DNA of 64,000 nucleotides. Source: Selaginella moellendorffii (lineage: Eukaryota > Plantae > Lycopodiophyta). The DNA lies in contig NW_003314280.1 of the NCBI RefSeq assembly GCF_000143415.4, positions 1,967,549 through 2,031,548 on the forward strand, read 5' to 3'. Position 1 is the stretch's first letter. Every line of letters begins with the position of its first letter. Made by a program: the position numbers and the translations under genes. The notes beneath the pieces were generated by a model. That model was not told where the DNA came from. It worked only from the letters and a program-made list of their open reading frames with translations, and ran no database searches. This document shows positions 1,494-54,273 of this stretch, piece by piece.

Positions 1494-3122
1494 CTACTCT
1501 GAAGTTAGCTCTATTGCGCTCTTGGGAATGTGAATGGTAAGCAAGCCATTTTGCAAAAATGCTCTAGTCTTCTTCAGGTCAGCAGTAGTGGGAAGCTTGA
1601 ACTTCCTTTGCTTGAAGACGTTGGCACTGGTCTTTACGGTGAGTTGATCCGGACCTGAACATACCACAATCACTTCCTCTCGTGATAAGCCTGCACAATT
1701 GCAAAACCAAAAGCTCTTGGGAAGGCGTGGAAGTGGGGAAGAGACATACCTGGAACTTCGATATAAAGGGTGTGGTGATGCTCCTCATCTACAGTAGTTG
1801 CCTCAATACGTTTGTTCGTGGCTGTAGCAGAGAATAAAAAAAGGAAATTAGTGGAGGTAAAAAGAAAAACAGAAAAATACTCGTGTCCAGCTCAGCCTCA
1901 TCACGGTCCTCAATTGGCACTGTCGAAGCTGTCCGCTTGAGCGCAGCGGCCCCCTTGGGAAAGCGAATAGTGAGAATCTCATCCTGGAGATTCACTATTG
2001 CACCATTGACGTCAGCGTGAGGAGGAACCACAAGGTTCTCGGGGCGGAATACGTCCTTCTCCGTGGAAACACGCACGCCCTGTCCATCGTTTGCAACACG
2101 CACTTGATCCAGAGACGTGAGACCTGTACAATAGTAGGCAAGAATAAGAAAATTTAATAAGATATGTCTGCAAATGACTTACCGGGCACTTGCACATCGA
2201 CAGTGTAGAACTGCTGGTTCTCGAATGACGAGCACAAGAGCTTGCGCTTGTCATATCCTGCAAGCCACAGCAAGGAGAAATAAAAAACTCCAGGCAGGAT
2301 CAAAGCCATACCTTTATTGTGCTTGAGGCAGTTTAGCAGTAGTTGTTGTGCATGTTTCTTCTCAAAGTTGTAGAGAGCAATGAGACCTCCGTGCTGAGAG
2401 AACTGCGGGAGTCCCCCGGCATCAGCCACCTCTTGCGCCAACCTGAGGCCCCTGGCACACCTTTTCAAGTGATCACTGGAGAAGACAGCGTGTGGGACGA
2501 CCGGTGTAGCATATGATGGAGAGCGCTCATGGATCAGAGAGGTGAGGCTTGTTGATTGCAGACCAAAGAGGTTGGGATAAGACTCAGCAGCAAACACACG
2601 CGCCTGCTCCTGCAACTCTTGCATGTTTGGCTCCCCGGAGAAGACTTCCTTCTCAGCTCGGCAAGCAGCACTCCGGCAAAAGTCATGCACGAGGCGAGTT
2701 TCTTCCTGTGTAGGGTGGTGTATGGGTGGCTCTCCACGAAAGTGGCGGAAGTCATCCTCTGAGGCGATGTTCACGAGCTGGATCATGTGTGGATACGGGC
2801 AGGGGTAGTCGCCGCAGTCGTCAAACCCAAGTGGTTTTTCGGAAGGTGGAGGGAAGTCGCCGCTCACGATTTCGGTGTACCTGAGCGTGTGATCCAGGAG
2901 ATGCGCCTGGAAGCAGCCGGTGGCACGATCAGAGTCACCTAGCGCCCGAAAGACTTGGCCGAGGACACGGTTGTTTAGGCGGAGCATCACCATCCACAGA
3001 AACTCTCCATATTCATTGTAGGCATCGTCCGTCGGTGGTTTGCTCACCTGAGGGAGCTTCTTGCCTTTGCTGCTGCTGCTGCTTGATGCCCTCCTTGCTG
3101 TGTGGACAAGCCACCTTAACAT
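1494..3122 (-). CDS. Unknown N-terminal domain + two tandem alpha-crystallin (HSP20-like) domains; family copy 1, apparently intact, 5 exons
   Basis: GT-AG splicing gives a continuous frame from ATG 3122 to TAG 1494. ACD1: FENQQFYTVDVQVPG|LTSLDQVRV...VPPHADVNGAIVNLQDEILTIRFPK. ACD2: DEEHHHTLYIEVPG|LSREEVIV...RKFKLPTTADLKKTRAFLQNGLLTIHIPK. Both resemble the HSP20 LP..AD...A...NG.L.I..PK motif. The N-terminus is R/S-rich and acid-free. Confidence 0.8.
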
Positions 3123-3166
3123 TTTCTAGGGTTAAACGTGTGTTCTGCTAGGGTTTTAGGAAGGGC

Positions 3167-4152
3167 ATGATGTGGGGTGCTCGTTTCAAGCGTTTGCAGC
3201 AGCCAAGTTTAATGTTGTTTCGTCTCCATAGCACTCATGGTCATGCTCGGGTGTTCTTGGACACGGGAATTGATATAGAAGTAGATCAATCGGAATGGGA
3301 TAAACGTGTAACACGGACTTTTGGAGAAACATGTACGACTTCAATGCTACAATTGCTCTATTTTAAATATTTAAGGCAAATCCGGGTGAACACTCTCTAC
3401 AGGATGAGGCACGAGGTACGATTTCAATACTAGAAATAATATTGATTGAATTTTATAAAGATAAATTTTTTTTTCAGGTTTGGAAAAAAATGATAAGTAT
3501 TAATCCATCAAGAAAGGATATAGACCAAGCAGTGACCCTGTTGTTACGCAAAGGAGGTTTGAATGTTTTTTCCTTTATTTCTTTGATTTCTTTTTTCTTC
3601 ATAGGGATAAAAACTTTTGGAGACCTTGCTCAGTTTCATCATACTTTTAATGCTTTTTGGACAATTGCACGAAATCCTCACAAGGATTGGGCACTGCTTA
3701 CTCCTGATAAAGCAAGGCATTTGGCACAAGCTTATTTTAAGGTATAATTTAGATTAGTTTTTATATGATAATTTTTCTTCTTAGGCAGCTATAGATGACT
3801 TGTGGAGTGGTTGCAATCCACTTACATTATCTGAAATCATGGACATTCTTATGGGTGGACAAGTATATTTTATTGCTAAGCAGTATAGGTTTGCTCTCAA
3901 AAAATTTCTTTATTATATTTGAAACAATTTTACAGTGACGAGGGAGCTCATCATGATAACAATATTTACAATGTGGTATGGCATTCCTATTCATCTCCAA
4001 ATCCACCAATTATCAAGATCAACGGATACACTCCATTAGAGGATATGGAAACAACAGATGTATTAATCCAAATTGGTGAAGCTTTACACAACAAGGACTC
4101 TCGGCAATTTCCATTTTTGAAGGCATTTACAGCAAGTGTGAGAAGATGTTAA
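3167..4152 (+). CDS. Unknown protein ('partner', copy A), divergent from ACD copy 1, at least 5 exons
   Basis: Exons ~3167-3415, 3478-3556, 3605-3741, 3785-3888 and 3936-4152 join in frame across GT-AG introns. Exon boundaries and motifs (FGDLA, DWA, LWSGC, ALHxKD..PF) are conserved in the paralog at 49688-50470. The 3' end is uncertain. Confidence 0.7.
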
Positions 4153-4277
4153 TATTTTTCTGTATTTACACAATAAAGTTTGCTTTAGAGTAATCCATAA
4201 TATATTATATTAAATAAATATATTTTTGGTTTGCTTAAGCAAACCAAATATACTTAGAATATGCTTAGATATTCATT

Positions 4278-4490
4278 ATACAATGGTATGGCATTCCTAT
4301 TCATCTCCATATCAAGATCAACAGATACACTCCATTATAGCATATGGAAACAATAGATGTATTAATCCAAATTGGTGAAGCTTTACACAACAAGGAATTT
4401 CTGTTTTTAAAGGCATTTATAGAAAGTGTGAAAGGAAGAGGTTAATCTTTTTCTGTATTTATAGAGTTTAATTACACAATAAATTTTGCA
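4278..4490 (+). repeat. Local degenerate duplicate of the partner last exon (3966-4190)
   Basis: tggtatggcattcctattcatctcca...gatgtattaatccaaattggtgaagctttacacaacaagga occurs twice. Confidence 0.85.
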
Positions 4491-7266
4491 ATAATCTCTA
4501 ATAAATTATATAGCATATATTATAAATATTATATTAAGTCTGAGCTGGTGGTAGTGAATATATTTAGAATATACTTAGATATTCAGAGATATTCTTCCAT
4601 TTAATGGTTGTTATTTATTGAGATTAATCATGTATTTATAATTTATAAATATGTTTTGTGAGTGTATGGAATATAAAAAGAGAATATAAGAAATATACAT
4701 ATCAATTAGCCTAAAAACCATAGTTTATATAGAGGAATGAGTGGTTAAGATTGAAACCAATCCAATGGCTACCAAAACTTTATTATGCTAATATTAATAT
4801 ACGGCATTGTAGCCATATACTTGGACCTCACATCATCTTTTCCTCTTAGAATGATGGAAGATCATTAGAATTCTCTCGTGAATGGGTTGAAATCTGAAAG
4901 AATATTAAGAGGAGCCATTGATAGATTTGTAAGTGGTGCCAATTATTCTTGATCCCTTTATACAAAGTGTTTCAATTGCTGTACATGCACAATTTCTGGA
5001 GGATCAACCTATTGGATGTTATGTTGAACTTCATAAACTAGTATTACGAACTTAGCACCAAATGTAACTATGCACATATTGGATAATATCACATTGCATT
5101 TCTAGCCAATAAAAAGATTTGTACAACTTCTCGATCACATAATGATGTCCTATATGCCCACATAGAATAGGAGAATAATAGTAAGTGTGAAGAAAGCATG
5201 GAATAAAGATTAAATGCACCACTAACCATAAATGATCATCAAGATCCGTCCGTAGAAAATACCATTTTCAAGGCTATATTGAGATTGTAAATGTCGAAAT
5301 GGTAAGTTATTAGCAAGTGATATAGGGTTCTCAAACCCATTGTGAAGCTTTCGAATCCACAGCTCAATTTTTTTAGCCTCACAGACCTTGTCAAAAAAAG
5401 GTAAATCCTGCTATACATCTTATGGACATTAAATGTCAAGTATAGCAACTGCTGATAGCACGGAATCCTCATCCAAAAAATCCATAATTTTTAAAACAAT
5501 AAGTTCGTCAAAAACATAAAAAATGAATGAAGAAGGAAGAGGTGCTCAAGAAAGGGCATTAACATCAACCATAGAACTCCCTAGGTGATAAACAATATCA
5601 AAATCATATCTATGAAGCTTTAAAACCCATTGAGCAATACAACCAATAAAATTCTTTTGTTTCAATAATGAAATAGCTACAGTATGATTACCTTCTAATA
5701 ACGTCCAAGAACTATGTAAATATGCATGAAGTTTCTCAAAACCCCAAACTGTTATTAAACATTCCATCTCTATTATAGAGTAGTTCACCTCCGTTGATTA
5801 TAATGTACATCTAATATATACAATGGGATGGCACTAGGATGGTGCTATATGCAATCATCTGTTGGAAAATTGCTAGAGCATTGTTCAAACTAAATGGCAT
5901 CACCAAAAATTCATAGAAACCAAATAGTGTACAAAAAACAGTTTTAGGAATATCCTCTTCGACCATCGGTACTTACCAGTACCTCGAAGCAATTAACTGG
6001 TGAACCAATAACTTCTCCCCAAATGATTCAAGAAATTAACAATATGAGGAAGAGGGTATATATCTAAGATTGTCACTTCATTTAACAGATGATAGTCAAT
6101 GTAAAAATGAATACTCCTATCAGGCTTTATCACAAGATGAGGTTCACACTCCCAAGGATTCCATGACTTCCAAATAATTCCCTTTTCCAATATCTCCTTA
6201 ACGTTTGCATGTAAAATTTTGATCTCTTTGGGTGACTAACGATAAATAGGAACTTTGATTGGACAAGCATCCCTAGTTAAAATAAGATGGCATGTTGCAA
6301 TTTTGGCCTTAGATGATAAGTTAAATTCAAAGAGATTGGCATACTCCTTCATAAGTTGGTCAACTGCTGCAATACAAAGATTGTTAGAGGGATTAGAAAA
6401 GGAAATAGAGGAATAAGATAGAAACTGAGGAAGAAGTAAGGGAGAGATAAAAGTGATAGAAGTAGAGATAAATGTAAAAGGACAAAGAGGTACAGAAGTA
6501 AAAAGAATGGAAAAAATATTATGAAGTATAAGATAGAGAGGAAAAACCTCAAAGTCACACTTGGCATGATTGTGCTACAATTAATCCATACCAAGGATGA
6601 GGTTAAAAAAGCTTGACTCGGCACCACCACAATGATTGCAACTCAAGTTTGAGATCGCCTACACACACAATTAAGTCCACCTCATCCTATGCAAATGTGT
6701 GTGTATGGCTGTTGCCATAAAGAATGAAAATTAACTCTACTGCATGACGCAAAAGTAGACAGCAACATGTGGCAATAGGCCGAGCAATAGAAGATAAACT
6801 CAAGTTTATATCAACCAACACAGAGAGAATAATAAGAGACCTTTTGTTATAAAAATGAACTTGGAAAGTAAACACTAGATAAACTGGTGCCGAGTGAACC
6901 CCTTAATGATACTTCCAAAAGAAAGATGGAGGGGTTATTGCCTTATTTGTGCAAGGTCTTTCTGTTACTCATGTGACTCCTAATTTTCTAGATGCATCTC
7001 AGTCTCCAAACCTTCTACTGTAGCAACACCAATAAAATGTTGTTGATGCCATGGTTTCCATCCAGGAAATGGAGGTCACTAATCTGGAAAATACCGACAA
7101 TACAATAAGTGTGACCAACTTCATCACATGCCCAGCAACAGATATCATGGCCATAACCATGTCCTTGTCCTAATCCTTGAACTTGAGTAATAGGAGTATC
7201 AACCTTCATTGGAACAAGATTATCATGAATGTGACTTCAGGTATCGAAAGATACTTGTCAACTAGT

Positions 7267-14000: not shown

Positions 14001-16279
14001 ACCAAATGAGCATAAGGACGGAATTCCTAAATGCTATTTGTCAAGCATACTTGATTTGGTTAGAGAAACTCATTCGTTTACTTGCTAGTGTTGGGAACCC
14101 CCTCGATATTGAGTTTAATCCCTTAATATCGTTACATGATAGCTTACCATGTTTGCCAAACACCCTTGCTATCATACCCTTTGTGTTAGTCTCATTTAAG
14201 GAATTGGAGCTAAAAGATGTGCAATAGAAAGTGGAAGAAGCGACATCTTATAATGTTGTACAAAGCGAAGGGCATCATCAAGGGTGGCTAAAGCAAGTGC
14301 ATGCACAAATCCTATTAAATCTTGACAAAAGCTCTAGCCACAACATTCCCAACTTGATTCGCTCCAACATATTTGTCTCCGCACGAAATAAGAGGCTTCA
14401 AAAACAAATGTTAAATTGCATCACCGACTCAAATGGCCCTTGATGAAGATGATGCAATTATTAAAAAGGTTCATCACAATCATCAGCATATCCAAATATG
14501 CATTTGAAGATGTCAAGAAGAATACTCCAATCCTCATGAGTGGTTGCACTCAAATCATTATACCACTACAATGCTATCATTTAGAAACATATGGGAAACT
14601 CATGTAAATGTTGAGTATCATTCCAGGAATGATATATTGAACCAATGGTACACATCATCCCCAAGATTCCCACAGAAGAACTCCAGCTAGACACAAGGAT
14701 TGGTAGTAAGAGCAAAAGGAATTGTACCACTTGCCGTAAAGGTTGCTATCAATTAAGTTTGATTGTTCAATTACAACCACATAGCATCAAGCAATTGCAT
14801 CAACTGTTGCTTTAAAGTCAAAGGAGGAGGAGGCTACTACTCTACTATGAAGATGAACGAAAAAGAAAGAATAAAAGAGAAAAAGTTGAAAAAAACAATA
14901 GAGAAAAGAAAATTTAAACAATATAAAAGCTAAATCTAAACCAAAATCCCAAAAGCAATCAGAAAAAAGGAGATCTAGACAATGCAAAAGCTAAATTTAA
15001 ACCAAAATCCCAAATCTTGGGACAATTAAAACTACTTCTCACCTCCACCAATGTGAGTGCATGGAATATGAAAAGAGAATACATGAAATATGTATATTAA
15101 TTAACCCAAAAACCCTAGTTTATATATAAGAATGAGTGGTCCAGATTGAAACCACTAAAATCCCACTATACTAATATTAGTATATGGCATCATAGCCATA
15201 CACTTGGACCACACAGTTTATAATTTATAAAACTAGAATATATTAAGAAGTAAATTAATTTACCATCTAACAGTTGATATGTAATATGTTTATAGTTATA
15301 ACTTTCCAATTGATCAATATGATTGATAAAGAGTAAGCACTATTAATAAGAAAATGAAGAATTGCTGCATGTAATGTATAAAAAATTATTTAGTATCTTA
15401 TTGTAAATTTAATGATATAAAAAATTCTAAAAAATATAATATATAGAAGTGGGTTATAAGTAAATATTAAAAAGCTAAAAGGTTTTATGATAGAAGCTCA
15501 GTATAAGATTTAGTAGAAATATTTTAATGGTACATACCTCATAAAGAGGTGCAAGTATTCTATGAATCTTCTCAAAACTGTCCCACCTAAAAAAATTAAA
15601 ATATTTATAATATCAAAAAGCTTTTTTTTATATTATAATAATTAAAACTATTTTAAATTATTATCAGCAATGTAGTTGAACATATTCCATCTGAACCCAT
15701 TGATCATTTTCATGTTGCTACTTAGATTTGTGACTATTGATCACCTGTTTATCAATGTCAATTGACTCTGGTAAGGCCAAATTTACAAAGCAGGCTAGAA
15801 GAAAAGTTATACTAGTCAACATCATCAATGCACTATTCAATTGTTATGTAACCTTGCTATGTCTCTAATGTTCTTTCCAAGGGAGAAAAATGAAAAACTG
15901 AACTCTGAAGATGAATCAGTTTAAGAACTCCTAGGACATGGAGATGGTTCAAATTGTCCCTTTTTGCTAAGATAAGAGAAATTTATCTTAAAATTTAGAA
16001 AGATGAAAACAAAATATTAGGAAAATCTATGTTCCAGAAATACAATCTCTCTAGAATATCTTTGATCCTTTGCCATTCTCCTCCCCTAACTAAAAAGTAA
16101 TGTTAAAAGTAAAAGGTTTAAGATTGTAGATATTATGTTTATAAACACTACAATAATTTGTTGCATGTTGCATGTTACATGCAACAATGTTTGGTTTGCT
16201 TAATAGTAGTGTTTATTATTTACCAATAGATTTAATGAAGTTTATAATTAACACACAAGATTAATCATAATACACTACA

Positions 16280-16345
16280 TACACACACAGATATAGAGAG
16301 AGAGAGAGAGATACATACATACATACATACATACATACACATGTA
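16280..16345. repeat. Compound microsatellite (AC)n/(GA)n/(TACA)n
   Basis: Directly visible. Confidence 0.9.
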
Positions 16346-16679
16346 TGTATGTTTGTATAACTTATTGTTGTAATATTCTCTGAAGACAATGTGAAACCTG
16401 ACATCCAAAGTGCAAGGTTTTGCATTCATCACCACACTATTGTTTCTATTAAAGAAAAAAAATGGCAGTTGTTCACAAGGTGGCATGGACTGAATTCAGC
16501 CCAATAGATTAGCTTATTCTCAAGACAGCAAGTAGTAAAATATTCCATTCGAACTCCCAGCTTAACTCTTGTCTAAAGCTATTTTATTCTTCTAGATTTG
16601 CTAATTATGCATGTAGAGGGTATATTTGGAACTATCGAGACTTCTGCAACTGAGACTTGCAACAAAATGTTCATTGACA

Positions 16680-17847
16680 AGGAAGGATATAACTCCATTG
16701 AGCTCTTGGAATGCAAGCCATTCCCGAAAAAGGCTCTAGCGTCCTTCAAGTCAACACTAAAGGAAATTTTGAGCTTCCTTTGCTGGTGCTGGTCATAACG
16801 ATGGGTTCTGGCCCTTCACAACCCACAATCACTTTCTCTAAAGCAAAAGCTTTTGAGAAAATACGTGAAAGTTTCACGGGACTATATAAAGAATATGGTA
16901 ATAGTTGCCTTGAAACATTGATCCAGTGAAGTGAGACCTGTGCGATAGGAAGAAAAAGAAATAAATAACAACATCTGCAAATGACTTTACCGGGCACTTG
17001 CACATCGACAGTGTAGAACTGCTGGTTCTCGAAGGAGGACCACAAGAGCTTCCGTGCGTCATATCCTGCAAGCCACAGAGAAAAAAGGAAAATAAAACTC
17101 CAGGCATGATTAGAACCATACCTTTATTGTGCTTGCAGCAGTTTAGCAGTAGCTGGTATGCGTGTTTCTTCTCAAAGTTGTAGAGAGCGACGAGACCTTC
17201 GTGCTGAGAGAACTGCGGCAGCCCCCCGGCATCAGCCACTGCCTGCGCCAACTCGAGGCTTTTGGCACACCTCCTCAAGTCATTGCTGGAGAAGGAAGCC
17301 TGTGGAACGACAGTATATGAATCTTCATCGATCAGATTGGAGAGGTTCGTGGACTGCAGACCAAGGAGCTTGGGATAACAATCAGCAACAAATGCTCCTG
17401 CAACTCGTGCACGTTTGGCTCCCCGGAGAAGACTTCCTTCTCAGCTCGGCAGGCAGCACTCCTACAGAAGTGTGTGCGGTGATGTATGGGTTCCTCTTTA
17501 CAGAAGCGGCGGAAGTTATCCTCCCAGGCATCGTCCACAAGCTTGATCATGCGTGGATACGGGCAGGGGTAGTCGCCGTTGTCGTCAAACCCGAGTGGTT
17601 TTCAACGGGTGGGAATTTGCCGCTCACGATTTCGCGGTACTCAAGCGTGTGACGCAAGAGATGCGCCTGGAAGCAGCCGGTGGTAGCATCACAGTCGTCG
17701 AGCGCCCTACAGACTACGGTTCTCTAGACGGAGCATCACCATCCACAGAAACTCTCCATACTCTTTGTAGGCCTCGTCCGTCAGTTTGCTCACCTGAGAG
17801 CCTTTGCTGCCACTCCTACTACTCGTGTGGATGAAGTACCTTAGCAT
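16680..17847 (-). pseudogene. Tandem-ACD family copy 2 (early stop, most of ACD1 exon deleted)
   Basis: ATG 17847 MLRYFIHT...EYGEFLWMVMLRLENRSL then TAG. High similarity to 2100-3120. The LTSL exon is fused directly to second-ACD sequence at ~16920. Confidence 0.85.
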
Positions 17848-17934
17848 TTTTTTAGTTTTTGGCAGAGTGAATACGCCCGGCTCAATTGAATTCCCTAAAA
17901 CCCTAGCCCTGACTCCATAAGAAATAAAAAGGCG

Positions 17935-19542
17935 CTATCATATTTCCGTTGCATGCAAATGGTAAGCAAACCGTTTCTGGAAAAAGCTCTAGTCTGCTTC
18001 ATGTCGGCACTAGAGGGAAGCTTAATCTTCCTTTGCTTGAAGGCGTTGGCATTGCTTTTAACGATGAGTTCGTTCCCTGCACCCACTATTATTTTCTCTC
18101 GCGACAAGCCTACACAGTCACAAACAAACCAACAGCTCTTGAGAAAACTAAAAAGTTTCAAGGGGTATACCTGGAACTTCGACATGAAAAATGTGGTAAT
18201 CCTTGTCATCTTCAATAGTTGCCTTGAGATGTTTGTTCTTGGCTACAAATATGATATCAATACTTTTGTTTAGCTCACCCTCGTCGAAGTCCTCAATTGG
18301 CACTGTCAGATCTGTCTCTTGGCAAATGGTGAGAATCTCATCCTGGAGATTAACTATTGCACCATCGACATCAGCGTAAGGAGGAATGGCAAGCTTCTTG
18401 TGCCAGAACACGTCCTTCTCCGTGGAAACAAGCACACCCTTTCCATCTTTCGCAACACGCACTTGATCCAGCGATGTGAGACCTGTCGCGCACAAGGAAA
18501 AAGAAATAAGATAACAACACCTGTAAATCATTACTTACCGGGCACTTGCACATCAACAGTGTAGAACTGCTGGTTCTCTAAGAACGACCAAAATAGCTTG
18601 CGCTCGTCATATCCTGCAAGCCACAGAGAAAAAGAAATAAAAAACTCCAGGGAGGAAAAGCCATACCTTTATCAACGAGCTTGTGGCAGTTTAGCAGCAG
18701 TTGGTAAGCGTGTTTCTTCTCAAAGTTGTAAAGAGCGACGAGACCTCCGTGACGAGGGAACTCTGGCAACCCCCCGGTATCAGCCACCTCCTGCGCCAAC
18801 TCAAGGCTCCTGGCACACCTCGTCAACTCAAGGCTGGTGACACCAGTATGTGGCACGACCGGTGTAGCATATGATCGAGATTGCTCCCAGACCAGAGCGG
18901 CGAGGCTCGTGGACCGCAGACCAATGAGCTTGATATCAGAGGCAAACAGACCGCCTGCTCCTGCAACTCGTGCACGCTTGGCCCCCTGGAGAAGACTTCC
19001 TTCTCGGCTCGGCAGGCAGCACTCCGGCAAAAGTCGTGCGCGAGGCGAGTTTCTTCCTGATCATGTCTGGATACGGGCAACCGTAGTCGCCTATGTCGTC
19101 AAACCCGAGTGGTTTCCCAGCGGATGGGGGGAATTCGCCGCTCACGATTTCGGTGTACTGGAGCATGTGATCCAGGAGATGCCCCTGGAAGCGAGATGTA
19201 GGGGTGGCTCTCCATGCAAGCGGCGAATTGCATCCTCCGAGGCATCGTTCACGAGCTTGACCATGGATGGAAACGAGTCGCCGCAGTCGTCAAGCCCGAG
19301 TGGTTGTTCAACAGGGGGGAATTCGCCGCTGGTTGTGATGCAGGACATGCGACTGGAAGGCGTCGCTGGCCCACCCACTGCCGTCTAGCGCCCTAAAGAC
19401 TTGGCCGCGGACACGGTTGTTTAGGCCAGAAACTCTCCATACTCGTCATCAGTGTTTTTCTCACCTGAGAGAGTTTATTGCATTTGCTACTGCTGCTCCT
19501 ACTCCTACTCGCATTTGCTATGTGGATGAAGCGCTTTAACAT
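17935..19542 (-). pseudogene. Tandem-ACD family copy 3 (frameshifts, internal duplication)
   Basis: ATG 19542 MLKRFIHIA...; the SGEFPP..PLG.DD.GD segment is present twice (~19090-19150, 19270-19335); both ACD exons are recognisable (NGLLTI). Confidence 0.85.
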
Positions 19543-19603
19543 TCTGAGAAGTCTTTCAAAGAACCCTATACCCCGTAGGATTTCGCCACAACACAGAAAC
19601 AAA

Positions 19604-20377
19604 AACTTACTTCATAGAGATCTTCCGAGACTAGGCTCCTAGAGTAATCCGCAGCATTTCTTCAAGCTCTCCGTCATGCCTCGCTGAATCTGTGTGGACA
19701 ACTCCAATCAAAATCAGCATAAATGTTATGCGTTTTCACTAACCGGTTTGTTTGAGCGCAAGTGGCGAGAGGTGCCTCAGTGACCGAGCAGTTTCTTTAC
19801 ACCATTTTTCATTGGTACTGGCCTAGTTGACAAGAAAGAAATCAACGCAGAGGCTCACCAGAGACTCGATTATCTCTTCAACGCGGTCCTTCGAGAAGCA
19901 GTAAATCATCCTGGAAAAGCATAGAAGCTGGTTAGTTCATACATAAAGTCCCATCAATCAAACTATTGCAGGATGTTCCGGAGCTTGAGAAGACGTTGGT
20001 GAATTTGCAACCGCGAGCTTGAATACAGGAGGCTATCCAGGGATTTGCTAAGATGCCAGAGGCTGGAGAGACCAGTGTCATGAAAAAGTAAGTGTACGAA
20101 GAAATAAGAGAACGGAAAACCACCTTTAAAGGGACAAAATGCGTCGGTCGATGCCACAAGCTACCGTATAGGCCAGCCTTGAGCCCGTGAGCGCAAGGTA
20201 TGCTCCTGCTAAGAATCTCAGAGCGCGTTTCATACCCAGCTGTCGTGAAAGTCGTGGAAGGAAATACGAGGCACTACAATCGGTATGAAAACCAGCGGCA
20301 ACTTCGGACTCTTAGATGTTCTCAAGTAGCATTATAACATTCTCGGTGACGATTCTAAACGTGCTGGGAAACGTAAA
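19604..20377 (-). pseudogene. Partial genomic duplicate of HIBCH with intron remnants
   Basis: Colinear with 21593-22537, e.g. gattctaaacgtgctgggaaacgtaaa and gagactcgattatctcttcaac. Confidence 0.85.
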
Positions 20378-20589
20378 TCCACAACGAAAGCACAAGCAAT
20401 TAAGGCACAGGCTACTGGATAATCTCTTCAACTCTCCTTGAGAAGCATCCATCGTGAAAAAGCATGCCAGAGCCTTACAGCAATTCTAAAATCCTTGACA
20501 CAAGCTTCCAATGTTCTTTTGAAAGGTTTTGGACGCAAAATCAATCCTTATCTCTACCTGCTGGTATCTTCTAGTGTTTTTCTTTTTGC

Positions 20590-20852
20590 AGGTGAGCGAC
20601 CATTGGATACTATGCAGGATATTGGTGCCGGGTTGCTGCTCTTTCCTAGCTGTCAACCTCTTCGACCTCTGTTTTCTCAATCTTCCAGGATCGTGGCTTG
20701 CAATGGGGAGTGAAAGTCGCAAGTCTGTCAATGTTCAAATCATTTCAGTGTTCATCAAATCATCTCTTTCTCGTTAATCTTTCTAGCTTGTCTAAAGTTC
20801 TTCCTTCCACCAGGATTACGCTCTACCTCAATGGCATGTTCGGAACAATCCA
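20590..20852 (+). pseudogene. Fragment of the plus-strand ZIFL gene (copy of ~28145-28520)
   Basis: tactatgcaggat, ggggagtg..tcgcaag, tctagcttgtctaaagttctt and aatggcatgttcggaacaat all match ZIFL exon and intron sequence. Confidence 0.7.
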
Positions 20853-20889
20853 GATGATGAGCGTGACGGACTAATTTGTGGAGCACAAG

Positions 20890-20995
20890 CAGCAGAGCTC
20901 TAAAAGTCGATCAGGATAAGTATAATAAATGTGCTACTGAATTGCGCTCTTTGGAATGCGAATGGTAAGCGAGAAAAAAACTCTACCCTGCTTCG
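20890..20995 (-). pseudogene. 3' scrap of the tandem-ACD family
   Basis: attgcgctctttggaatgcgaatggtaagc (LTIRIPKSAI) matches 1514-1542; taaaagtcgatca matches the 1420s. Confidence 0.65.
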
Positions 20996-21322
20996 AGTCA
21001 TACTCATGTTCTGTTCTTAGGCGGAAGATCACCACCCATCCAAACTCTGAAGACGAATTGCCGCTAGTGACATCCGCCACCACTCGGAGATCACTGCCGA
21101 GATACGTGCTGGTCTCCCATCGAAGTGGTCCTCGGTCCTGCGTCCCCGAGAGTTTCTTCCCCTTCTCGCAAAAACCCTAAGCCTCTAAGCCTCATGAATA
21201 TTCGCGACTATTTTGAATTCAAACAAGAAAATGGCGGGAGTTTGGCTGGATCTCCTAGGCCAAGTATTTGCCACTCCACCTTGAAATGAAGGGTTTGAAG
21301 GGATGACGAAAGGGATTTTAGT

Positions 21323-23210
21323 TTACCTTTCCTCGCCTTCCAGAGGCAATTGAATTTGCTCCCTGGCAGTGTAGGTGTTCAAGATCATCTCTACCATGTC
21401 ATCCGTGACTTCTGCAAGAGTCGATGGATTCCACTGCAAAAGTTTCACCAATTAACATGGCTGAACCTTAACGTTTGAGAGCCAACACAACCAACCTTTG
21501 GAGCGCGATCTTTATCCACAACCACAGCTCTAATCCCCTAGTCATAATTGGAAAGAAGCAGTAAGAACTTTTATGGAACCAGGAAACCGAAGAACTTACT
21601 TCGTAGAGATCATCCGAGACTAGGCTCCTTAAGCAATTTAGAGTAATCCGCTGCTCTCTTTCCAAGCATTTCTTCAAGCTCTGAGTCCTGCCTTGCCGGA
21701 TCTGTGTTGACAATTCCAAACACAATCAGCACAAAAATTGCGTACGCGCGCGCGAGAGAGAGTTTCTTCTAACCGATGCTAAGGCTTGCTTGAGCGCAAT
21801 TGGCGAGAGGCGCCTCAGTGACCGCGCAGTTTCTTTACACCATTCGTCATTGGTACTGGCCTAGTGAAACGGTTGACAAGCGGGATTTATCAAGAAAGAA
21901 ATCAACGCAAAGGCCTCAGGGACTCACCAGAGACTCGATTATCTCTTCAACTCGGTCTTTCGAGAAGCAGCTGTTTATCCAAGTCATCCTGGAAAAGCCT
22001 GGAAGCTTGTTAGTTCATACGTAAAATTCCATCGTGGACGATTAAGAAGTTTTGCCTTTTCATGACACTGCTCGCTTCAGCTTCAGGCATCTTAGCAAAT
22101 CCCTGGATAGCCTCCTGTATTGAGCTTTCCGGTTGTAAATTCAGCAAAGTCTTCTCAAGCTCCGGAACATCCTGCAATAGTTTTTTATTGAAATGTAAGA
22201 AGAGATCAGAAAACGGAAAACCACCTTTGAAGGGACAAAATGCGTAGCGATGCCACAAGCTAGCATATCAGCGCAGTCCAGTTTCGATCCTGTGAGCGCA
22301 AGGTATTCTCCTGCAAAACTTAAGTCTGAGATCAAGTAAGAAAACTCAAAGAGTGATTTTTACCCAGATGTCCTGGAAGTCGTGGAAGGAAATACGAGGC
22401 ACTACAATCAGTATGAAAACCGACAGCAACTTCGGGAGTGGAGAATGCCTGGCAGCGAAACTGTTAGATACTCTCAAGTAGCAATCACAAAACTTACAGC
22501 ATTCTCAGTGACGATTCTAAACGTGCTGGGAAACGTAAAGCCTGCTCCCCCTCCCACAACGAGTCCGTGCCAAATAGCTACCTGTGAAGAACAAAAGTCT
22601 CTAAGTTCCAAGTCTTCTAGGCTTTGAGAAACGTGATGTGAACATACTCTTGTTTTCCTGTAGCTGTACAGGTGATAGTCGAGCCAGTACTTTTTGTACA
22701 CGACTTCCTTCCACGATTCGTCTGGGAAAGACACGCAAGGGAATCAAAACCACCAAAGCTTAATCCTTGAACAAAACCTTTCCTGTGATCGTAGAACATG
22801 CGCAGGTCACCACCAGCAGAGAAAACCTTGCCTGCGGCCTGCGAGCCAGGGATTTAAAAAGAGAAGAATGGTAGGTGGAGCTCACCTTGATGATTATAAG
22901 CTCCACACTCTCATCTCTCTCCCACTGCTCAAACAGCTCCGCGAGTCGGGAGACCTGAAAGAGAAAGCTCAAGAACAAAAACCAGGATGCCGCAAGGCTT
23001 CTTGATCCAAATGCAAACTCTTACAACGGAGAGATTGAGACAATTGAGCACTTGAGGGCGATTGAGGGTCATTACTCGCACCCTATCGTGAGCATCCACG
23101 AGCACCTCCTCCATCTGGAACAGAAACAATCTATGAGAGAACAAGAAACAAAGAGAATGCTTGAGAGCTCCCTCTTTCTCGCAAACCTGATTTTCGTCCG
23201 GCATGCCCAT
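21323..23210 (-). CDS. HIBCH: 3-hydroxyisobutyryl-CoA hydrolase-like protein (crotonase family), multi-exon
   Basis: TLNRPQVLNCL, FSAGGDL, GLVVGGGAG, PEVAVGFHTD, GEYLALTG, GIRAVVVDKDRAPK|WNP; TAA at 21323. Confidence 0.9.
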
Positions 23211-23506
23211 GATGATAGAAATGCGCTCGCTCGCTCGCTCGGCCCCAAACATCTTTTAACTTAAAGAGGTGGTGCTACGCCTCTACGAGTCAAAGCTTTA
23301 CGACCAGCAGGCACACGTTGGTATCCAAACCAAACTCGATCTTCTCGCACGAACTGGTCAGATCATGTCACTGTGGTATTGTAGCACGCGTAAATCTTCG
23401 ACGAATGTTTTTCATTGCGCAGCCGAGTAGTATCGAAGCTCGAGTTTTTTTACATCGCTATGTAGTGGAATGGTTGTCATGCCAGGATCTTGTCACTGGA
23501 TTGACA

Positions 23507-25966
23507 TCAAGCTAGCTGATCCGCTGCTTTCTCGTCTTGAAGCTTGTTGGTGGACGCGGGCAAGAAAGGCCTGAGCGTGGCCAGGACCGTAAGAAAGGCA
23601 AAGAAAATGAGGAAGAAGAACACCAGCTCGTCCCCTGCACATCCAAAGTTGTCAAGTTACTCTCACGCACGTCTCACGAATTTGCAAACTTGTTTCTCAC
23701 CTGGAAGGAAGGCTGCGTGCTGGCGCTTTTGAGCCCAAGCAAACCTGAGAAAAAGAACTGCGTTAGCTCCTTCCTCCTTGGTAGCCAAATATCAGAAACG
23801 AGTACTCACACTGAACCTCCTCCTGCCGGGCCAAGAGCCTTGAAAAGAGAAACAACGCTTAGTGACAGTCCATTTGCAGCACCTCTCTGTTCTTGAGTCT
23901 GCAAGCAAAAAAGAAAAGAGAAGAGAGAAAGAAAAGAGAACGTGAACTTCCGGGGGAAAACCAAGAAATGGACGACTCATTATACCACGGAGTTGTTTAT
24001 CAGAAGAAACGATCCGGTCATTGTGGCCGTCTGCAAGAACAAAGCCCATTAGCATTGAAACATGTAGTAGTAGACTGGTCACGTACGGTGAGCACGAACT
24101 TAAGCACGGAGGCAGTGAGCAAGACTACCCACAGCCAAACGTTTTCCAGCTTTGACATGAGAGGATATATACAAAGTATAGGAATTGCCAGGATCTGAGA
24201 GAAAGGGCAACAAAATCAGAAGAAGGAACTTATAGCATCTTACTTACAGCTGATATCCGAGTCATGAAAATAGGCCCAAGCATGTTCGCAACAGCCGGAA
24301 AAATTGTAAGCTGGAAAACAAGCATGGCGAAACCTGCAACCATAGTTCCCGATCAGTACCTGTCAAAGCCACGGTTACACAGGGATTCACCTGAAATAGC
24401 CAGGACTTCTCCAACGTCAGAACTAGTGAAGCTAAGTCCTCCTTGTAATCTTGGACTAACAGCCCACAGTGAGAAAATCTACAAGCAAACAGAAGTCAGC
24501 CCCCACGGGAAGAAATGGTTGCAACGTATACCTCTGTGTAGGCAATGTCATGGAGGGACCAAAGGCAATACACAGTTGTTGATGCAAGGAATGGCCAGTT
24601 CTTGAGAATCGACTGCTTTCTTGCCGGTTGCTTGTCTTCAGCAGCTGATATGTTCCTTTTAGGATGCTTGTGGAGTGTTTCCTGGCAAAAGGAAAAGAAG
24701 AAAACCTCAAACACTGCACTGCCAAAAGAAAGAGCACTTACAGGTAGAGTAAAACACATACAGAGACCGAGTAACGCTATCGCGGAGACAACCAGAGCTT
24801 GCAATAAGTATGGAAACCTGCCACGCAGAAAGAAGAAGAAGAAGAACCATAAGAAAGAATCAGAAGTGCTGCCAGTTACCGTGCAAAGAGGGATCCATGG
24901 TGGAAAACATTCGGATACTTTACAGCCGGCTGCAAGGGGAAATTTGTCAGCTGTATACAATTCTCCGCATAAATACCTGCGACAGGAACCCCCCCAGAGC
25001 TGGTCCAACTATAAGTCCTAGCCCCCAAGTTGTGCCAACCTACGAGAGAGACATTTTTGCCAGGAGTTAAGAAACTAGTGTAACACCGTACGTTGCCGAG
25101 AGACAAGGTTTTCAAGCAATTCAGTAACTTACGACCGACACACCTAGTGCTTGATGCTCGTCGCTGCAAATCTCCGATGCGTACGCCTGAACAGATTAAA
25201 ACCGTGTCAACGAGATGAACTTCACTAGTAGAAGACCCGTACCTTAACCGGACCAAGCATGCCATTGAAGCTGCCAAGGCAAAACCGGGTCACCAGAGCC
25301 ATGGTGAAGCTCGTGCTCACGCCAAACAACGTGTTGAAGACCAACCTGATTATGAACAGATGCTCAGAATGAAAGATACTAGACAAAGTTTGACAAACGA
25401 TAGAGGAAGTTTGCTTACACTGACACAATTCCAAGCACCATCACTGGCCTCCGGCCAATCCTATCCGCCAAGTAGCCCCAGAACACAGCAGTGAAGAAAC
25501 GTCCAGCCATAAACGACGATCCTGAACAGTCGACTCACTCTCAGTTCCAAAAGTGAACATGTAGACGACAAAGTAGAGAAAGCATTACCAATCCATCCTG
25601 CGTAGAAGCCAATATCGCTCTCGGTTTTCGCAACATGGAAATCACGCACCTGGAAAGAACAAAACGTGTAGCAAGAAGCCAACCCGGAGAGTATCTCACC
25701 ATAAAATATAGAAACGGGTAAAGCACGGAAATCGGCAGCGCTGTCGAAACCATTTGGATCGATGAGACAGAACGAGAAAGAATAACGTAAAGCGCTGCTA
25801 GGATAGACAACGTACCATTGCAAAGAACCACGAATCCCAGGGACACCAGCTGCTTCAGCGGCGGCGGCGATCCCTTCTCGCGGAGCCGCCATATCTGGCA
25901 GCCGGGACAATCCGGGAACTCGAGCTCCGGCTGTTGACGATCGCGTCCTAGCAGCGGCTCCTCCAT
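23507..25966 (-). CDS. ZIFL: Zinc-induced facilitator-like MFS transporter, multi-exon
   Basis: CPGC motif, [49 protein letters not shown]; TGA at 23507. Confidence 0.92.
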
Positions 25967-31234: not shown

Positions 31235-33078
31235 ATGCGGTGCTTCGCCCACAAGAAATCGCGGCACAAGAAGGCATCACTGGCGGGGCAGGACGCCTCC
31301 GCCAAGATGATGCGAACCATGTCGGCTCCACCCACATTCCTGGTCACGGATGACGACCCAATCCCGCCGCCGCCACCACTGGCTCACCCATCGCCATCGC
31401 CCTCGCCATCGCCATCTCCCAGCGCCATCGCCAGAAACCCAAGATCAAAGCCCACCGCCATCGCGGTGCCCAAGATCTCCACCAGGATGGAAGATGGCTC
31501 CACGTCGCCCCTCGTCACTCACTCAGGCCCCAGTGGATACGCGAGCTTGAGCGGCGTGAGGAGGGATCCCATCGTCTTCCGGGGCCAGCCACTGCCGCTG
31601 CCCACGCCAGAGTCTTGCGGCCTCTCGCCAGAACCATCGAGACTCATGGGCTCCCCGGCGGTGACCAGGGATTCCACCGCCGCCAGTGATCACCATCGCC
31701 CCGGCAAGGAGTTCAAGAAATCGGCATCCATGCCACTGCCAAGGCCACCGCCAGTAGCCCACGAGAGGCTGGCCGCCGCGCACATCACCTTTTGCCCCGA
31801 GACCTCGTGCATTGGCGAGTCCGGCAATGGCCCGGCTTTCACTTGCACCGTCTCGATCGATGCCAATCCCCGCGGCGGCGGTAGCAGCAAGGACTCCACG
31901 CAAGCGGTGCTCGTCCGGCTATCGGATACGACAATGCAGGTAAGAACCACGCCATAGCTTGGCTTCCATAGCTCAAAGCGCAGTTTTGATAGGATTCCAA
32001 GGCTTGGATCGAGCACGTCAAGGAGATTGTGTGCCTGCGCGACGCGCACCTCAGCCGGATCCTGGGATTCAGCTTCACCACCGACGAGAAGCTGGTGGTT
32101 TACGAGATCCAGGCCAACGGGAGCTTGGACAGGCTCTTGTATGGCCGGAGCCGCGATCGGCCGCCGCTCGACTGGGCAACGCGGGTGAGGATCGCCACCG
32201 ATGCTGCGCGGGGGCTCGCGTTTCTTCACGAGCGATCGCCCACAAAGGTACGTCCGAAAGCTGGCTACGTCCAAAGTGCTCTCGCGTTCGTTGTTGCTCG
32301 TCACCCTCCACCATAGCTAAAAGCTTGTTTGTGCGTGATCTTCTTCCAGCTCATGTACAAGGACTTTAGAACTTTCAACGTGCACGTCGACAAGGAGCTG
32401 CGAGCACGACTCATGGGCTATGGATTCACGCAGAGGTTTATGAATCCGAGCTCGCTCATGGTGAGATCAAAAGTTTTGGCAGAGAGGATCTTGACAAGAT
32501 GTTGCTCTTTGTGCTTGAAGGTGGCGGCCTACGCGGCGCCCGAGCTTCTCCAACGAGGAGCGCAGTCGCTACCATCGCCCAAGAGCAACGTGTGGAGTTT
32601 CGGAGTGGTGCTGCTGGAGATTCTCACCGGCCGCCAGAACCGGGACGAGATGTTCGCGGTGGAGGAGCAGGACCTGGTCGGCTGGACGGCGCCGTATCTA
32701 GCCAACGACAAGAAGCTCTTCCTGGTCGTGGATCCGGAGCTCAAGGGGATGTTCCCGGCGAGATCCGTGTCGCTCTTTGCAAAGCTGGCGGCGCAGTGTT
32801 TGCAAAGAGACCCGGCGGCGCGGCCCAGCATGGATCAAGTTGTCCAGTCCCTGGAGCACGTCCAGGCCGAGCGCGATCACCACATCAAATTGTTCGATGC
32901 CTCGGTGGGGAGTGACAGTCGCAAGCCACTCATCGAAGCTCTCAGGGAGTGTAGCAGCCCCGGGGCGGCGGTGGCGATCCATCCGGCCTTCTCCACCGTC
33001 AATGGCACTCACGTCCAGAAGAAGATCGTCACCCGGATCATCAAAACGCTGTGTTCTTCGCCAGGAACTTTCGACTAG
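31235..33078 (+). CDS. Receptor-like cytoplasmic kinase (RLCK-VII/PBL-like), probable pseudokinase
   Basis: GSLDRLLYGRS, LDWATRVRIATDAARGLAFLHE, PKSNVWSFGVVLLEILTG, CLQRDPAARPSM. VAIK is replaced by AVLVRL, HRD by YKD and DFG by GYG. Short introns at ~31940, ~32248 and probably ~32461. Confidence 0.88.
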
Positions 33079-33104: not shown

Positions 33105-35318
33105 TCATCGTGCTGCCATCGATGGAGCGCTCGACAGCGCGTTGGCTAGCACCGAGTGAAGCCCACCACTCTGGGAGGAATCCGCGAGCGCTCTCTCCAC
33201 CACCAGCTCTGGCAGCCGCCGGGTGGCGCTGGCACCGATGACGCTCGTCCAGTTGCGAGCATCCGGGACGAAGGGCATGCTCGCGACGAGATCCTCGGCG
33301 TCGCGCAGATGTCCCGCGCGGCAGAGAACATCGATCATACATCCATAGTGCTGCTTCGTCAATCCAAGCCCAAAGTCATAGCCAATGGAACCGAAGCGCG
33401 AGCGCCCGATCCTCACGTCGCCCGCGTGGTTGCAGCCGTGGAGAACGCACGCCAGCGACGATTCGTCCGGCGCCACGCCATGGATCAACATCCTGCCATA
33501 ACTCTCGAAGAGATCATCACTCTGGTGCCTGGCTTGCGCTTGCATCGCGAGGATCACGTTCCAGGCAATGACGTCGGGGGCCTCCGGCGTGGACTGGAAG
33601 ATGGCGAGCGCGCGATCGGCGTGGCCGCTCTGCGCGTAGGCCGAGATCATGAGCGTGCTCGAGTAGAGGCTGCCGTGATCCGGCATTAAATCCCAGAGCT
33701 CTCTAGCTCGTTCCAGCCTGCCAGCGCCGACGAGCGCCGCGAGCATGAGGTTCCAGGAGCCGGTGTTCCTGTCCGGCATAGCCGAGAAGAGATACTCCGC
33801 GTCGGCGAAGCGTGCTGACTGGACGTACCCCGTCAGCAAGGCATTCCACGTGTCGGTGTTGTGCGACGCCATGCTGTCAAACAGGCACTTGGCGCGTTCC
33901 ACGTGTCCTGCGTTCGCTAGCGCCGCCGCCATGGCATTACAGCACACCACGTCCGGGCAAGCAACCACGGTATCGAACGTCCTCTTGGCCTCCTCCACGT
34001 GCCCCCACTGGGAATATGCCACCACGAGCGCGGTGCACGACACCACGTCAAGCTCGGGCATGGAATCGAACTCGCGTTTTGTCTCCTCGAGCGTGCCGTA
34101 TCGTACGTACATGTCCAGCATGGCGTTCCAGCACACGAGGTCCCGTTCAGGGAATCTCTCAAACAAGAGCTTGGCTTGAAAAATATCCCCTTTCTGGGCA
34201 TATGCTGCGAGCATCGTTGTCCACGAGACAAGATCTCGCTGGAGCATGCCATCGAACAAGATCTTAGCTTCGTCAACCCGATTGTTTGCGCAACGCATCT
34301 CCAAGAGTGTGTTCCATGACACGAGATTGAGCTCTGGCATGATTATGGCAAACTTGATAGCTCCATCCAGATGCCCTGATTGGGCATACGCTGCAAGGAT
34401 CAGATTCCACGAGACCATGCTTCTTTCAGGCATCTTGTCAAACAACGCCTTGGCAGTTTCGAGCTGGTAGTGAGCGAGAGCTGTGAGCAAGGTGTTCCAT
34501 GACACCACATCCCAGAAGCTCATCGTATCAAACAGCAACTTGGCCTCTCTCCAGCAACCATTTTGCCCATACGCGGCTAACATCGCGTTCCACGATCGCA
34601 GGTTTGGATCCGGCATGGAATCAAACATGGACTTCGCTCGACCAACGTCTCCATTCTGGGCATATGCCGCGAGCATCGCTGTGCAAGCCACCACGTCGTG
34701 ATCCGCCATAGTCGCAAACAGAGACTCGGCGTCACGCAAATACCCGTGCTGGGCGTAAGCCACCAGCACTGTCGTCCAGGCCACGAAATCGGGGTCGGGC
34801 ATAAGATCAAACACGCGTTTCGCGCCAGAAATATTCCCAGTCTCGGCATATGCTGCGATCATAGCATTCCACGAGACGCGGCTCCTGGACGGCATCTTCA
34901 AGAACGCATCCTCCGCTTCTTTGATGAGACCCTCGTTCGCATATAGTGTAAGCATGGTGTTCCACGAGACCGTGTCTTTCACGGGCATTACAGAGAACAA
35001 CGTTCGAGCGTCCTGGAGATGCCCGTTTCGGGCATATGCCGAGAGCATCATGTTCCAGGAGAAGCTGTCCTTGTGGGCGATGGCGTCAAACACCGATCGA
35101 GCCTCAGCAGCGCTGCCGCATCTACCGTACGCTTGAACGAGCAAATTGGAGAGGTAGGAATGTGATCCAGCATCATTTCTCTCTTCCTGGAGCTTGATAG
35201 AGGCATGAAGACGCCTGGCGTGAGATAGACTGCTACACGATCTTAGCAGCTTGATGGAGTCCTGGTGCTGGGCCGAAAACTCGTGGACCATGGCTTGCGG
35301 AGTAGTATCAGGTATCAT
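33105..35318 (-). CDS. PLS/SS-type PPR protein with E domain, no DYW
   Basis: Single ORF with roughly 18-20 repeats of ~31 aa (D.VSWN.ML.AYA..G....A..LF..MP) ending HYGCMIDVLCRAG...MPFVPD...W. First ATG is at 35318; the ORF track starts at a TTG. Confidence 0.95.
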   Translation of the reverse strand: MIPDTTPQAMVHEFSAQHQDSIKLLRSCSSLSHARRLHASIKLQEERNDAGSHSYLSNLLVQAYGRCGSAAEARSVFDAIAHKDSFSWNMMLSAYARNGHLQDARTLFSVMPVKDTVSWNTMLTLYANEGLIKEAEDAFLKMPSRSRVSWNAMIAAYAETGNISGAKRVFDLMPDPDFVAWTTVLVAYAQHGYLRDAESLFATMADHDVVACTAMLAAYAQNGDVGRAKSMFDSMPDPNLRSWNAMLAAYGQNGCWREAKLLFDTMSFWDVVSWNTLLTALAHYQLETAKALFDKMPERSMVSWNLILAAYAQSGHLDGAIKFAIIMPELNLVSWNTLLEMRCANNRVDEAKILFDGMLQRDLVSWTTMLAAYAQKGDIFQAKLLFERFPERDLVCWNAMLDMYVRYGTLEETKREFDSMPELDVVSCTALVVAYSQWGHVEEAKRTFDTVVACPDVVCCNAMAAALANAGHVERAKCLFDSMASHNTDTWNALLTGYVQSARFADAEYLFSAMPDRNTGSWNLMLAALVGAGRLERARELWDLMPDHGSLYSSTLMISAYAQSGHADRALAIFQSTPEAPDVIAWNVILAMQAQARHQSDDLFESYGRMLIHGVAPDESSLACVLHGCNHAGDVRIGRSRFGSIGYDFGLGLTKQHYGCMIDVLCRAGHLRDAEDLVASMPFVPDARNWTSVIGASATRRLPELVVERALADSSQSGGLHSVLANALSSAPSMAAR

Positions 35319-35362
35319 AGCTGTGATCAAGAGCTTTAAGTTGATCCATAGCCCTGTGACTT

Positions 35363-47649: not shown

Positions 47650-47940
47650 CCTAGCGGAGGCTACAAAGACAATCGGTTTTCTACCTGATAAAAACCGAGA
47701 CTAAAGATCATAAATCCAGTGCCTGTAAATTGGACCCAGTTGCTTTGCAATTTTGATGAAAACGCCGGCTTGGTTCTTGGCCATGAGTGGGAAGGAGGTG
47801 TCCCACGCATGAGATGTATGGAGCAGCAAGAATTTTAAGCAATGCAAAACAATTCATACCAGGAACCAAACTCTGATCAACAACAACCAAGATTGCCATA
47901 ACAATCACAACATCAGCGCTATTTAAAAGCCGTCAATCAA
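47650..47940 (-). pseudogene. Duplicate of the MAX1 5' end (exon 1, intron 1, start of exon 2)
   Basis: gaggctacaaagacaatcggtt and ttgatgaaaacgccggcttgg..cttggccatgagtggga match 46757-47050. Confidence 0.85.
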
Positions 47941-49610: not shown

Positions 49611-49687
49611 CTTGCTTTTCTCGGGTTTGTCTCTAGGGTTTTGGGTTTTAGCGATCTCAAGCAGAAGATGGTTTCATTGCTCCTCCC

Positions 49688-50470: not shown

Positions 50471-51136
50471 CTTTTTTGTTTTGAGGGACAAAGCCATCAA
50501 ACTAGGGGGTGAGCTCATGGATTGACAGTTATTTTGTTTTCAAGGGACCGATGTACATTTGGAACTGCTGACAGGTATTCCTTTTCATCAACTATGTTCA
50601 TTTATATGAACAGCAGATCAGAGAGCTCGTGGACAACATCAGCAGCAAGCGCGAAAGAAGAAATGGGGCGGAACCCTATCTCCAAGCAGGAAGATGGGAT
50701 AATCTGGGCATCAGAAGATCCTAGATAAGATCCTAGATAAAAGCAACAAATCCATGAGAAAATGCTCTACGCCATCACTGGGAACTTCCCACTTGTTTGG
50801 TATCCTCGAACTTCAACCTTGACCTGTGTTGTACAGTCACTTCCTTCTGGTAATATCTGGTCCTTAGGAAGTACGTTGATGATGCTAGGGGGCCGCCAAA
50901 GGTGATGAAGTCCATCAAACTTCTTATGGGAACTTGTCCCAAGATTGGGGATCTACTCTTGCACAACTGATGATTGAGGAGCCAGACTGGGATCCTTAAG
51001 TAGAAGTGGCTCTGAATCCTGAAGACCAACTAGAATAAAGAGCTTGTCGAGAGTTGTTGAAACTTCCATGCCTTGTACTGTGGCATTTGGTGTAGCTGAA
51101 AGAACTTTGGCATTTACTCGACTTCAGCTGCTAGAT

Positions 51137-54194: not shown

Positions 54195-54273
<79 letters not shown>

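Follow-up and report, generated by a model that had tools for sequence, protein, structure and literature searches.

A tandem alpha-crystallin gene and an orphan gene paired head to head in Selaginella moellendorffii

What holds a gene for a tandem alpha-crystallin-domain (ACD) protein and an orphan gene together, start codon facing away from start codon, in the genome of the lycophyte Selaginella moellendorffii? The two genes, here called A and B, lie near one end of a stretch of 64,000 nucleotides (the window; position x of the window is x + 1,967,548 on the scaffold record GL377584.1), and the original prediction was that they form a functional module, either a toxin with its antidote or a dedicated chaperone with its client. 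We find that the pairing is old and real. On balance, we favor the interpretation that two divergent genes, long paired and jointly regulated, belong to a birth-and-death family that is so far confined to S. moellendorffii, and killer-protector behavior is unnecessary to explain the pattern.

The intact pair

The pair that gave rise to the question (pair 1) consists of the following parts, in window coordinates.

1494 to 3122, minus strand: gene A1 (SELMODRAFT_413077, P0001), 465 amino acids, intact, with an open spliced frame; exons 2312-3122, 2183-2257, 1881-2123, 1750-1821 and 1494-1690, introns all GT..AG
2312 to 3122, minus strand: A1 exon 1, 270 amino acids, a presequence-like N-terminus and then a domain of 230-240 amino acids without a family match
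1494 to 2257, minus strand: two tandem ACDs in A1 exons 2-5, ACD1 in exons 2-3 and ACD2 in exons 4-5
3123 to 3166: 44-bp spacer between the start codons of A1 and B1, with telobox-like TAGGGTT at 3127-3133 and 3149-3155
3167 to 4152, plus strand: gene B1, long model of 261 amino acids, intact, frame open; exons 3167-3415, 3478-3556, 3605-3741, 3785-3888 and 3936-4152

The start codons (ATG 3122 on the minus strand, ATG 3167 on the plus strand), their separation by 44 bp and the tagggtt motifs between them are all present in the sequence, as had been proposed. Exon 1 of A1 is 100% identical to the 465-amino-acid SELMODRAFT_413077, and spliced RNA contigs support the introns at 1690-1749 and 1822-1880. 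The protein opens with a basic, serine-rich segment, MLRWLVHTARRASSSSSS... (MLRWLVHTARRASSSSSSKGKK...), and in the N-termini of A copies MLRRxIHT is conserved. The translations also bear out the earlier observation that the N-termini of both A1 and B1 are basic and free of acidic residues, over 31 residues in each. For the remainder of exon 1, we found no Pfam family, no PDB profile match and no usable look-alike in the ESM Atlas, and a word search with the exon returned relatives solely among S. moellendorffii proteins; when profiles of the A and B alignments were run against the PDB, no match had an E value below 0.08. An AlphaFold2 (AF2) model of this N-domain, built from seven paralogue rows, has helices throughout and a mean predicted local distance difference test score (pLDDT) of 39.8, too poor for a fold search; from this low-confidence model the domain is probably helical.

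The second half of A1 is recognizable. ACD2, at residues 387-459 of P0001, passes the threshold of the Pfam HSP20 family (PF00011) with 37.8 bits against a cut-off of 20.8, and phmmer matches A to the plant small heat-shock protein (sHSP) structures 5ds2, 5nms and 1gme. ACD1 is a diverged copy of ACD2 (27% identity, E 4e-12), too diverged to pass Pfam. The C-terminus, ...LLTIHIPKSAIELTSE, leaves eight residues after the last strand and reads I-E-L rather than a clear I-X-I/V. The earlier label of a tandem-ACD protein is therefore correct, yet more than half of the protein is other sequence, and A departs from the classical sHSP architecture of one ACD in a 12-43 kDa monomer with a short N-terminal arm. 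We found no earlier description of an alpha-crystallin architecture that joins such an N-domain to two ACDs.

The public annotation of B1 (SELMODRAFT_413078, P0009) has 182 amino acids and begins at ATG 3404, 79 residues short at the N-terminus. The 261-amino-acid model is better, because an RNA contig spliced as 3297-3413, 3476-3554 and 3603-3707 uses introns 1 and 2 exactly and reaches upstream to 3297, the frame is open across the 79 codons 5' of Met80, and the paralogue P0010 can be aligned to the added N-terminal part in blocks such as ARVxLDTGIDIE and MLQxxYFxxLxQIRxxTLY. By this alignment, B is coding and conserved in its presequence-like N-terminus, and conserved residue blocks extend along the whole protein. 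Homologs were sought with single exons, the open frame 3367-3747 and database proteins as queries. Pfam has no family for B1 or P0010, and a word search with B returned B itself only. An exhaustive HMMER search of 1.84 billion cluster representatives found B in S. moellendorffii only, with three real matches: B1, P0010 (SELMODRAFT_448992, 336 amino acids) and P0011. A fourth match, the repetitive 1197-amino-acid metagenome protein P0012 (E 8e-5), was rejected as a low-complexity artefact. The ESM Atlas returned nothing usable for B (best 0.90, unnamed clusters), and an AF2 model of full-length P0010 from four rows (pLDDT 42.1) was again too poor for a fold search; B is probably a helical protein. 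An origin of B from the A N-domain by inversion and divergence was rejected at an hhalign probability of 2%. We found no paper in the literature that mentions the locus tags.

Both genes are transcribed, at low levels, in the small number of conditions covered. In run X1, a small run of unknown condition available as assembled contigs, A1 and B1 are correctly spliced, at depths of 4.3-4.7 and 4.4, respectively. Two large raw RNA runs, of which about 12% each was read, gave 4-5 reads of A and none of B, and a third run gave nothing. The X1 contigs over the 3' exons of A1 (1456-1793) differ from the reference by 2-4%, and may derive from a different allele or accession, or from a closely related paralogue; the B1 contig shows 0 differences over 301 nt.

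Pairing, decay and divergence of the copies

Our census of copies covers the fetched loci of S. moellendorffii. It contains five head-to-head A/B pairs, two of them intact and three decayed in both members.

Pair 1, window 1494-4152: both genes intact
Pair 2, window 48040-50470: both genes broken
Pair 3, L004 on GL377583.1: A exon 1 open, ACD2 exon deleted; B with several stops
Pair 4, L005 on GL377727.1: deletions in both genes; a deleted derivative of the L004 lineage, with flanks common with L004
Pair 5, L007 on GL377712.1: a 574-amino-acid HSP20 gene 59 bp from the 336-amino-acid P0010 (B7), both intact

Pair 2 and the copies of A in the window that stand by themselves are made up as follows.

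48040 to 49600, minus strand: A2, pseudogene, 79% nucleotide identity to A1, introns included
49601 to 49687: spacer of pair 2, with CTAGGGTTTTGGGTTTT
49688 to 50470, plus strand: B2, pseudogene, 37-48% amino-acid identity to B1
16690 to 17847, minus strand: wA17, A-only pseudogene with a frameshift in exon 1 and the ACD1 exon missing; no B match nearby
17946 to 19540, minus strand: wA19, A-only pseudogene with a rearranged exon 1; no B match nearby

Pair 2 had been placed at 47923-49610 and 49688-50470. Its recurrence and the breakage of both members stand, with the correction that 47923 was slightly too generous a boundary for A2, whose similarity begins at 48040. Exon 1 of A2 is split over 3-4 frames, and in B2 the phases of exons 1 and 2 do not match, and exon 5 has a frameshift and an early stop after DVGAHP. 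The intron positions of pairs 1 and 2, thought to be identical throughout, coincide for all introns of A and for introns 2-4 of B. The public model SELMODRAFT_413086 (P0011, 521 amino acids) is a chimera, its first ~320 residues being antisense of A2 and the remainder running through the broken B2. The two other long ACD copies, wA17 and wA19, are the partnerless pseudogenes that they had been taken for.

All five copies of B lie beside a copy of A. The two intact B genes adjoin the two A genes that are fully intact and whose context is known, and the three decayed B genes adjoin broken or truncated A genes. A is often found without B: six or more copies have no B beside them, the majority being broken (wA17, wA19, L003a-c on GL377916.1, L004b and L002/L006), and one further apparently intact A, P0003 (LOC9651562), is, like P0007, not placed on a contig. 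The proposal that the two genes duplicate and decay as a unit thus holds for the five pairs, with their matched integrity and with B always accompanied by A, and is qualified by the A-only copies. Larger segmental duplication, an alternative source of the repeated adjacency, applies to pairs 3-5, which belong to bigger duplicated segments and have common flanks, while pairs 1 and 2 share the pair and nothing else, their similarity, nucleotide or translated, being confined to 1509-4169 and 48040-50485.

Pair 5 differs in detail from pair 1. Its A gene has an extra stretch resembling exons 4-5 downstream of ACD2 (L007 7942-8300), possibly a third ACD, and a further partial A copy lies 6 kb past B7 (L007 15965-16664). 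B7 (L007 10001-10499) lacks an intron where B1 has intron 1, and its region matching B1 exon 5 is interrupted by an additional one; introns have therefore been gained or lost between B lineages.

The spacers are conserved in their motifs as well as in their shortness. The 7-mer TAGGGTT, whose frequency over the whole window is 0.23 per kb, is present twice within the 44-bp spacer of pair 1, and the 59 bp of pair 5 contain one TAGGGCT and one TAGGGTT. In each of these intact pairs, the first of the two motifs begins 5 nt from the start codon of A. In pair 2, one motif is retained and the second is degenerate; in the decayed pair 3, the second is gone. Telobox-like motifs also occur within 70 bp upstream of several A-only copies. 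The genes are thus head to head, less than 1 kb apart and provided with common conserved promoter elements, as in other bidirectional pairs, and 3123-3166 is likely to serve the two of them as one bidirectional core promoter of the telobox type, with transcript leaders that overlap or are extremely short.

The two halves of the pair differ sharply in divergence. The A bodies of different pairs are 79-84% identical (introns 86%, exons 83-84%), with a synonymous divergence (dS) of 0.24-0.38, about 0.3, and a nonsynonymous-to-synonymous ratio (omega) of 0.4-0.7; their tree is star-like, and at either end of A the similarity runs out within 20-80 nt of the start or stop codon. The neighboring B genes, at a distance of 44-59 bp, have exons 58% identical and proteins 40-47% identical. 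The proportions of synonymous (pS) and nonsynonymous (pN) differences between B copies are 0.72-0.78, which is saturated, and 0.35-0.40, with omega about 0.12-0.25 (B1 versus B7: pS 0.715, pN 0.40, omega about 0.25; B2 versus B7: pS 0.745, omega about 0.12; B1 versus B2: pS 0.78, pN 0.365). The B copies are ancient and under purifying selection, and the A gene bodies have a recent common ancestry. There is a sharp compositional step across 3167-4700, from 46-56% GC in A1 (0.59 at third codon positions) to 37-43% in the exons of B1 (0.34), with 16-23% in the B1 introns and 23-35% downstream, and the differences between B2 and B1 are biased 112:47 toward A/T in B1. Saturation is found also between B2 and B7, which are of similar GC content, and therefore does not reflect only an AT-rich drift of B1. 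The supposition that A and B share one history does not survive this comparison. Because dS in A is about 0.3, introns included, next to saturated dS in the adjoining B, we infer that ectopic gene conversion, acting between the numerous copies of A, has probably homogenized the A halves repeatedly.

These values bear directly on whether B is a gene at all. B might be non-functional, an open reading frame or transcript that arises incidentally when transcription from the A promoter runs in both directions; its low expression, with no reads in the two large RNA runs, its lack of a family, a fold and relatives outside S. moellendorffii, and the breakage of 3/5 copies would all agree with that. 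We consider it highly improbable, since two copies keep five-exon open frames at 40% identity, with omega about 0.25 and synonymous saturation, splice sites are used, and conserved blocks extend along the whole protein.

A functional dependence between the two proteins has more in its favor. A could be a dedicated ACD chaperone or adaptor and B its client or cofactor in the same organelle, with selection for adjacency and co-expression. The pairing of 5/5 B loci with A, the match of intact with intact and decayed with decayed, the purifying selection on B, the spacer layout kept in pairs 1 and 5, the long survival of the head-to-head arrangement, the conservation of presequence-like N-termini among paralogues of both genes and the presence of A and B in the same RNA run all fit such a module. 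Adjacency is weak evidence for it, because a separation of 44-59 bp will keep A and B together through almost any duplication or rearrangement. The near-uniform A beside a B only ~40% identical argues against tight one-to-one co-adaptation, and neither protein folds with confidence. A complex prediction of P0001 with the annotated B1 (P0009) scored 0.00 and gave no answer, and so speaks neither for nor against binding. We regard an interdependent module as possible but doubtful.

The selfish version of the original prediction, a gamete or spore killer in which one gene poisons meiotic products and the linked gene rescues its carriers, draws on tight linkage (44 and 59 bp between the start codons of the intact pairs), lineage restriction, many decaying copies and a difference in A copy number between haplotype scaffolds. 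The presequence-like N-termini recall the mitochondrial components that have been reported in plant pollen killers (10.1101/2021.09.08.459474, PMC11761171, PMC10657391). These features are generic to birth-and-death families. There is no direct support for it, and nothing in the analysis points to toxicity, rescue, segregation distortion, mitochondrial location or physical binding; expression is low in the sampled RNA runs; and B, long constrained and saturated in dS, is an old, stable gene unlike the young drive genes of fast turnover. We therefore give this explanation hardly any weight. A broader view in which a co-adapted pair is held adjacent by selection, whether as an organellar double-ACD chaperone with an orphan client or cofactor or as a killer-protector pair, with A uniform by conversion and B diversifying, seems to us unlikely.

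Our preferred reading of an old co-regulated pair can be stated as a series of steps. One very short, telobox-bearing bidirectional promoter would drive both A and B, which would be co-regulated through the spacer. Segmental duplication would copy the cassette, and redundant copies would lose both genes. Ectopic conversion would keep the A bodies alike, and the B copies would stay deeply diverged under purifying selection. A is an atypical alpha-crystallin protein, most likely an ATP-independent holdase or adaptor, possibly organellar, and the products of A and B may work in the same compartment. Several points weigh against this scheme. There is no pair with one clearly functional and one dead member, and an interdependent module would look the same. 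The head-to-head layout has persisted in three B lineages with saturated synonymous sites. The case for co-regulation consists of motif conservation and one small RNA run, and that for gene conversion of discordant divergence. Finally, an unannotated B away from A could exist; that B never occurs without A is a statement about the fetched loci.

Other features of the window

The remaining copies and neighbors of the pairs in the window are as follows.

4269 to 4433, plus strand: partial tandem repeat of B1 exon 5, copied from its 3' part and containing a stop codon; blastn 75% to 3967-4275, tblastn 60%
51191 to 51352, plus strand: isolated piece of the last A exon, just past B2 and in the orientation opposite to that of A2
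32329 to 33078, plus strand: ordinary neighbor gene
33105 to 35330, minus strand: ordinary neighbor gene
40774 to 41421, plus strand: ordinary neighbor gene
45779 to 46576, minus strand: ordinary neighbor gene
54175 to 54873, minus strand: ordinary neighbor gene

The partial duplicate of B1 sits in a very AT-rich stretch of 23-27% GC, and the lone A fragment is nearest to the L002 and L007 types (84-88%). The region 15431-23509, which contains wA17 and wA19, has a counterpart on the alternative haplotype (L003, GL377916.1) with three tandem A copies in place of two, and 17946-19540 has the appearance of a fusion made by unequal crossing-over, with L003a supplying its 5' part and L003b its 3' part. 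The haplotypes are 96% identical in the flank and 85-91% identical within the A cluster. No allelic scaffold was found for pair 1. The neighborhood is gene-dense and ordinary, with pentatricopeptide repeat proteins, cytochrome P450 fragments and a protein kinase fragment.

Comparison with known systems

The closest named relatives of A are the HSP20 sHSPs (PF00011), including plant class I proteins and chloroplast Hsp21: like them, A has an ACD that passes Pfam and matches solved plant sHSPs. A differs from them in having 465 amino acids rather than a mass of 12-43 kDa, two ACDs, and a 270-amino-acid N-region without a family match. A holdase-type activity is a natural guess by analogy. Two ACDs in one polypeptide are known from animals, where the flatworm proteins Tsp36 and p40 are two-ACD sHSPs. 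A two-ACD sHSP is also reported from the earthworm Eisenia fetida (PMC13226371), with the tandem ACDs in one polypeptide as in A. The animal proteins are without the long novel N-domain of A, and common descent of the ACD duplication in A and in animal sHSPs is unlikely. In plants, the ACD is fused to other regions in Arabidopsis RTM2, IDM2/IDM3 and a set of 'uncharacterised ACD proteins', often with roles outside heat shock. These non-classical proteins use the ACD as a module in the way that A does; the N-domain of A has no detected relation to them, and the word search found the A family only in S. moellendorffii.

The plant killer-protector loci, among them rice qHMS7 and qHMS1 and Arabidopsis PK3/APOK3, resemble the A/B pair in tight linkage, lineage-specific genes, copy variation and possibly organelle-targeted products (10.1101/2021.09.08.459474, PMC11761171, PMC10657391). 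The A/B pair differs from them in that it is not known to cause transmission distortion, toxicity or rescue, and in that B is old and constrained; the likeness is one of description. If A and B did prove to be a killer-protector pair, no such system would have been reported from a lycophyte before. The pair is a testable lycophyte candidate for co-regulated organelle proteostasis and, less likely, for meiotic drive, neither of which is known to have been studied there at gene level.

The A/B cassette is also a natural experiment in gene conversion: neighbors 44-59 bp apart differ at least seven-fold in synonymous divergence, because only A appears to be homogenized. If the pairing proves functional, a new alpha-crystallin architecture and a new orphan family would be tied together by a bidirectional promoter among the shortest that can be expected; if it is regulatory only, the family is an ordinary lineage-specific one of birth and death. 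Plant bidirectional head-to-head pairs with telobox elements are divergent genes with a short spacer and AAACCCTA-type motifs near their start codons. A and B share with them the orientation, the very short spacer and the conserved AAACCCTA-type motifs, and differ in that their spacer, at 44-59 bp, is extreme and that their pairing has been kept across B lineages saturated at synonymous sites.

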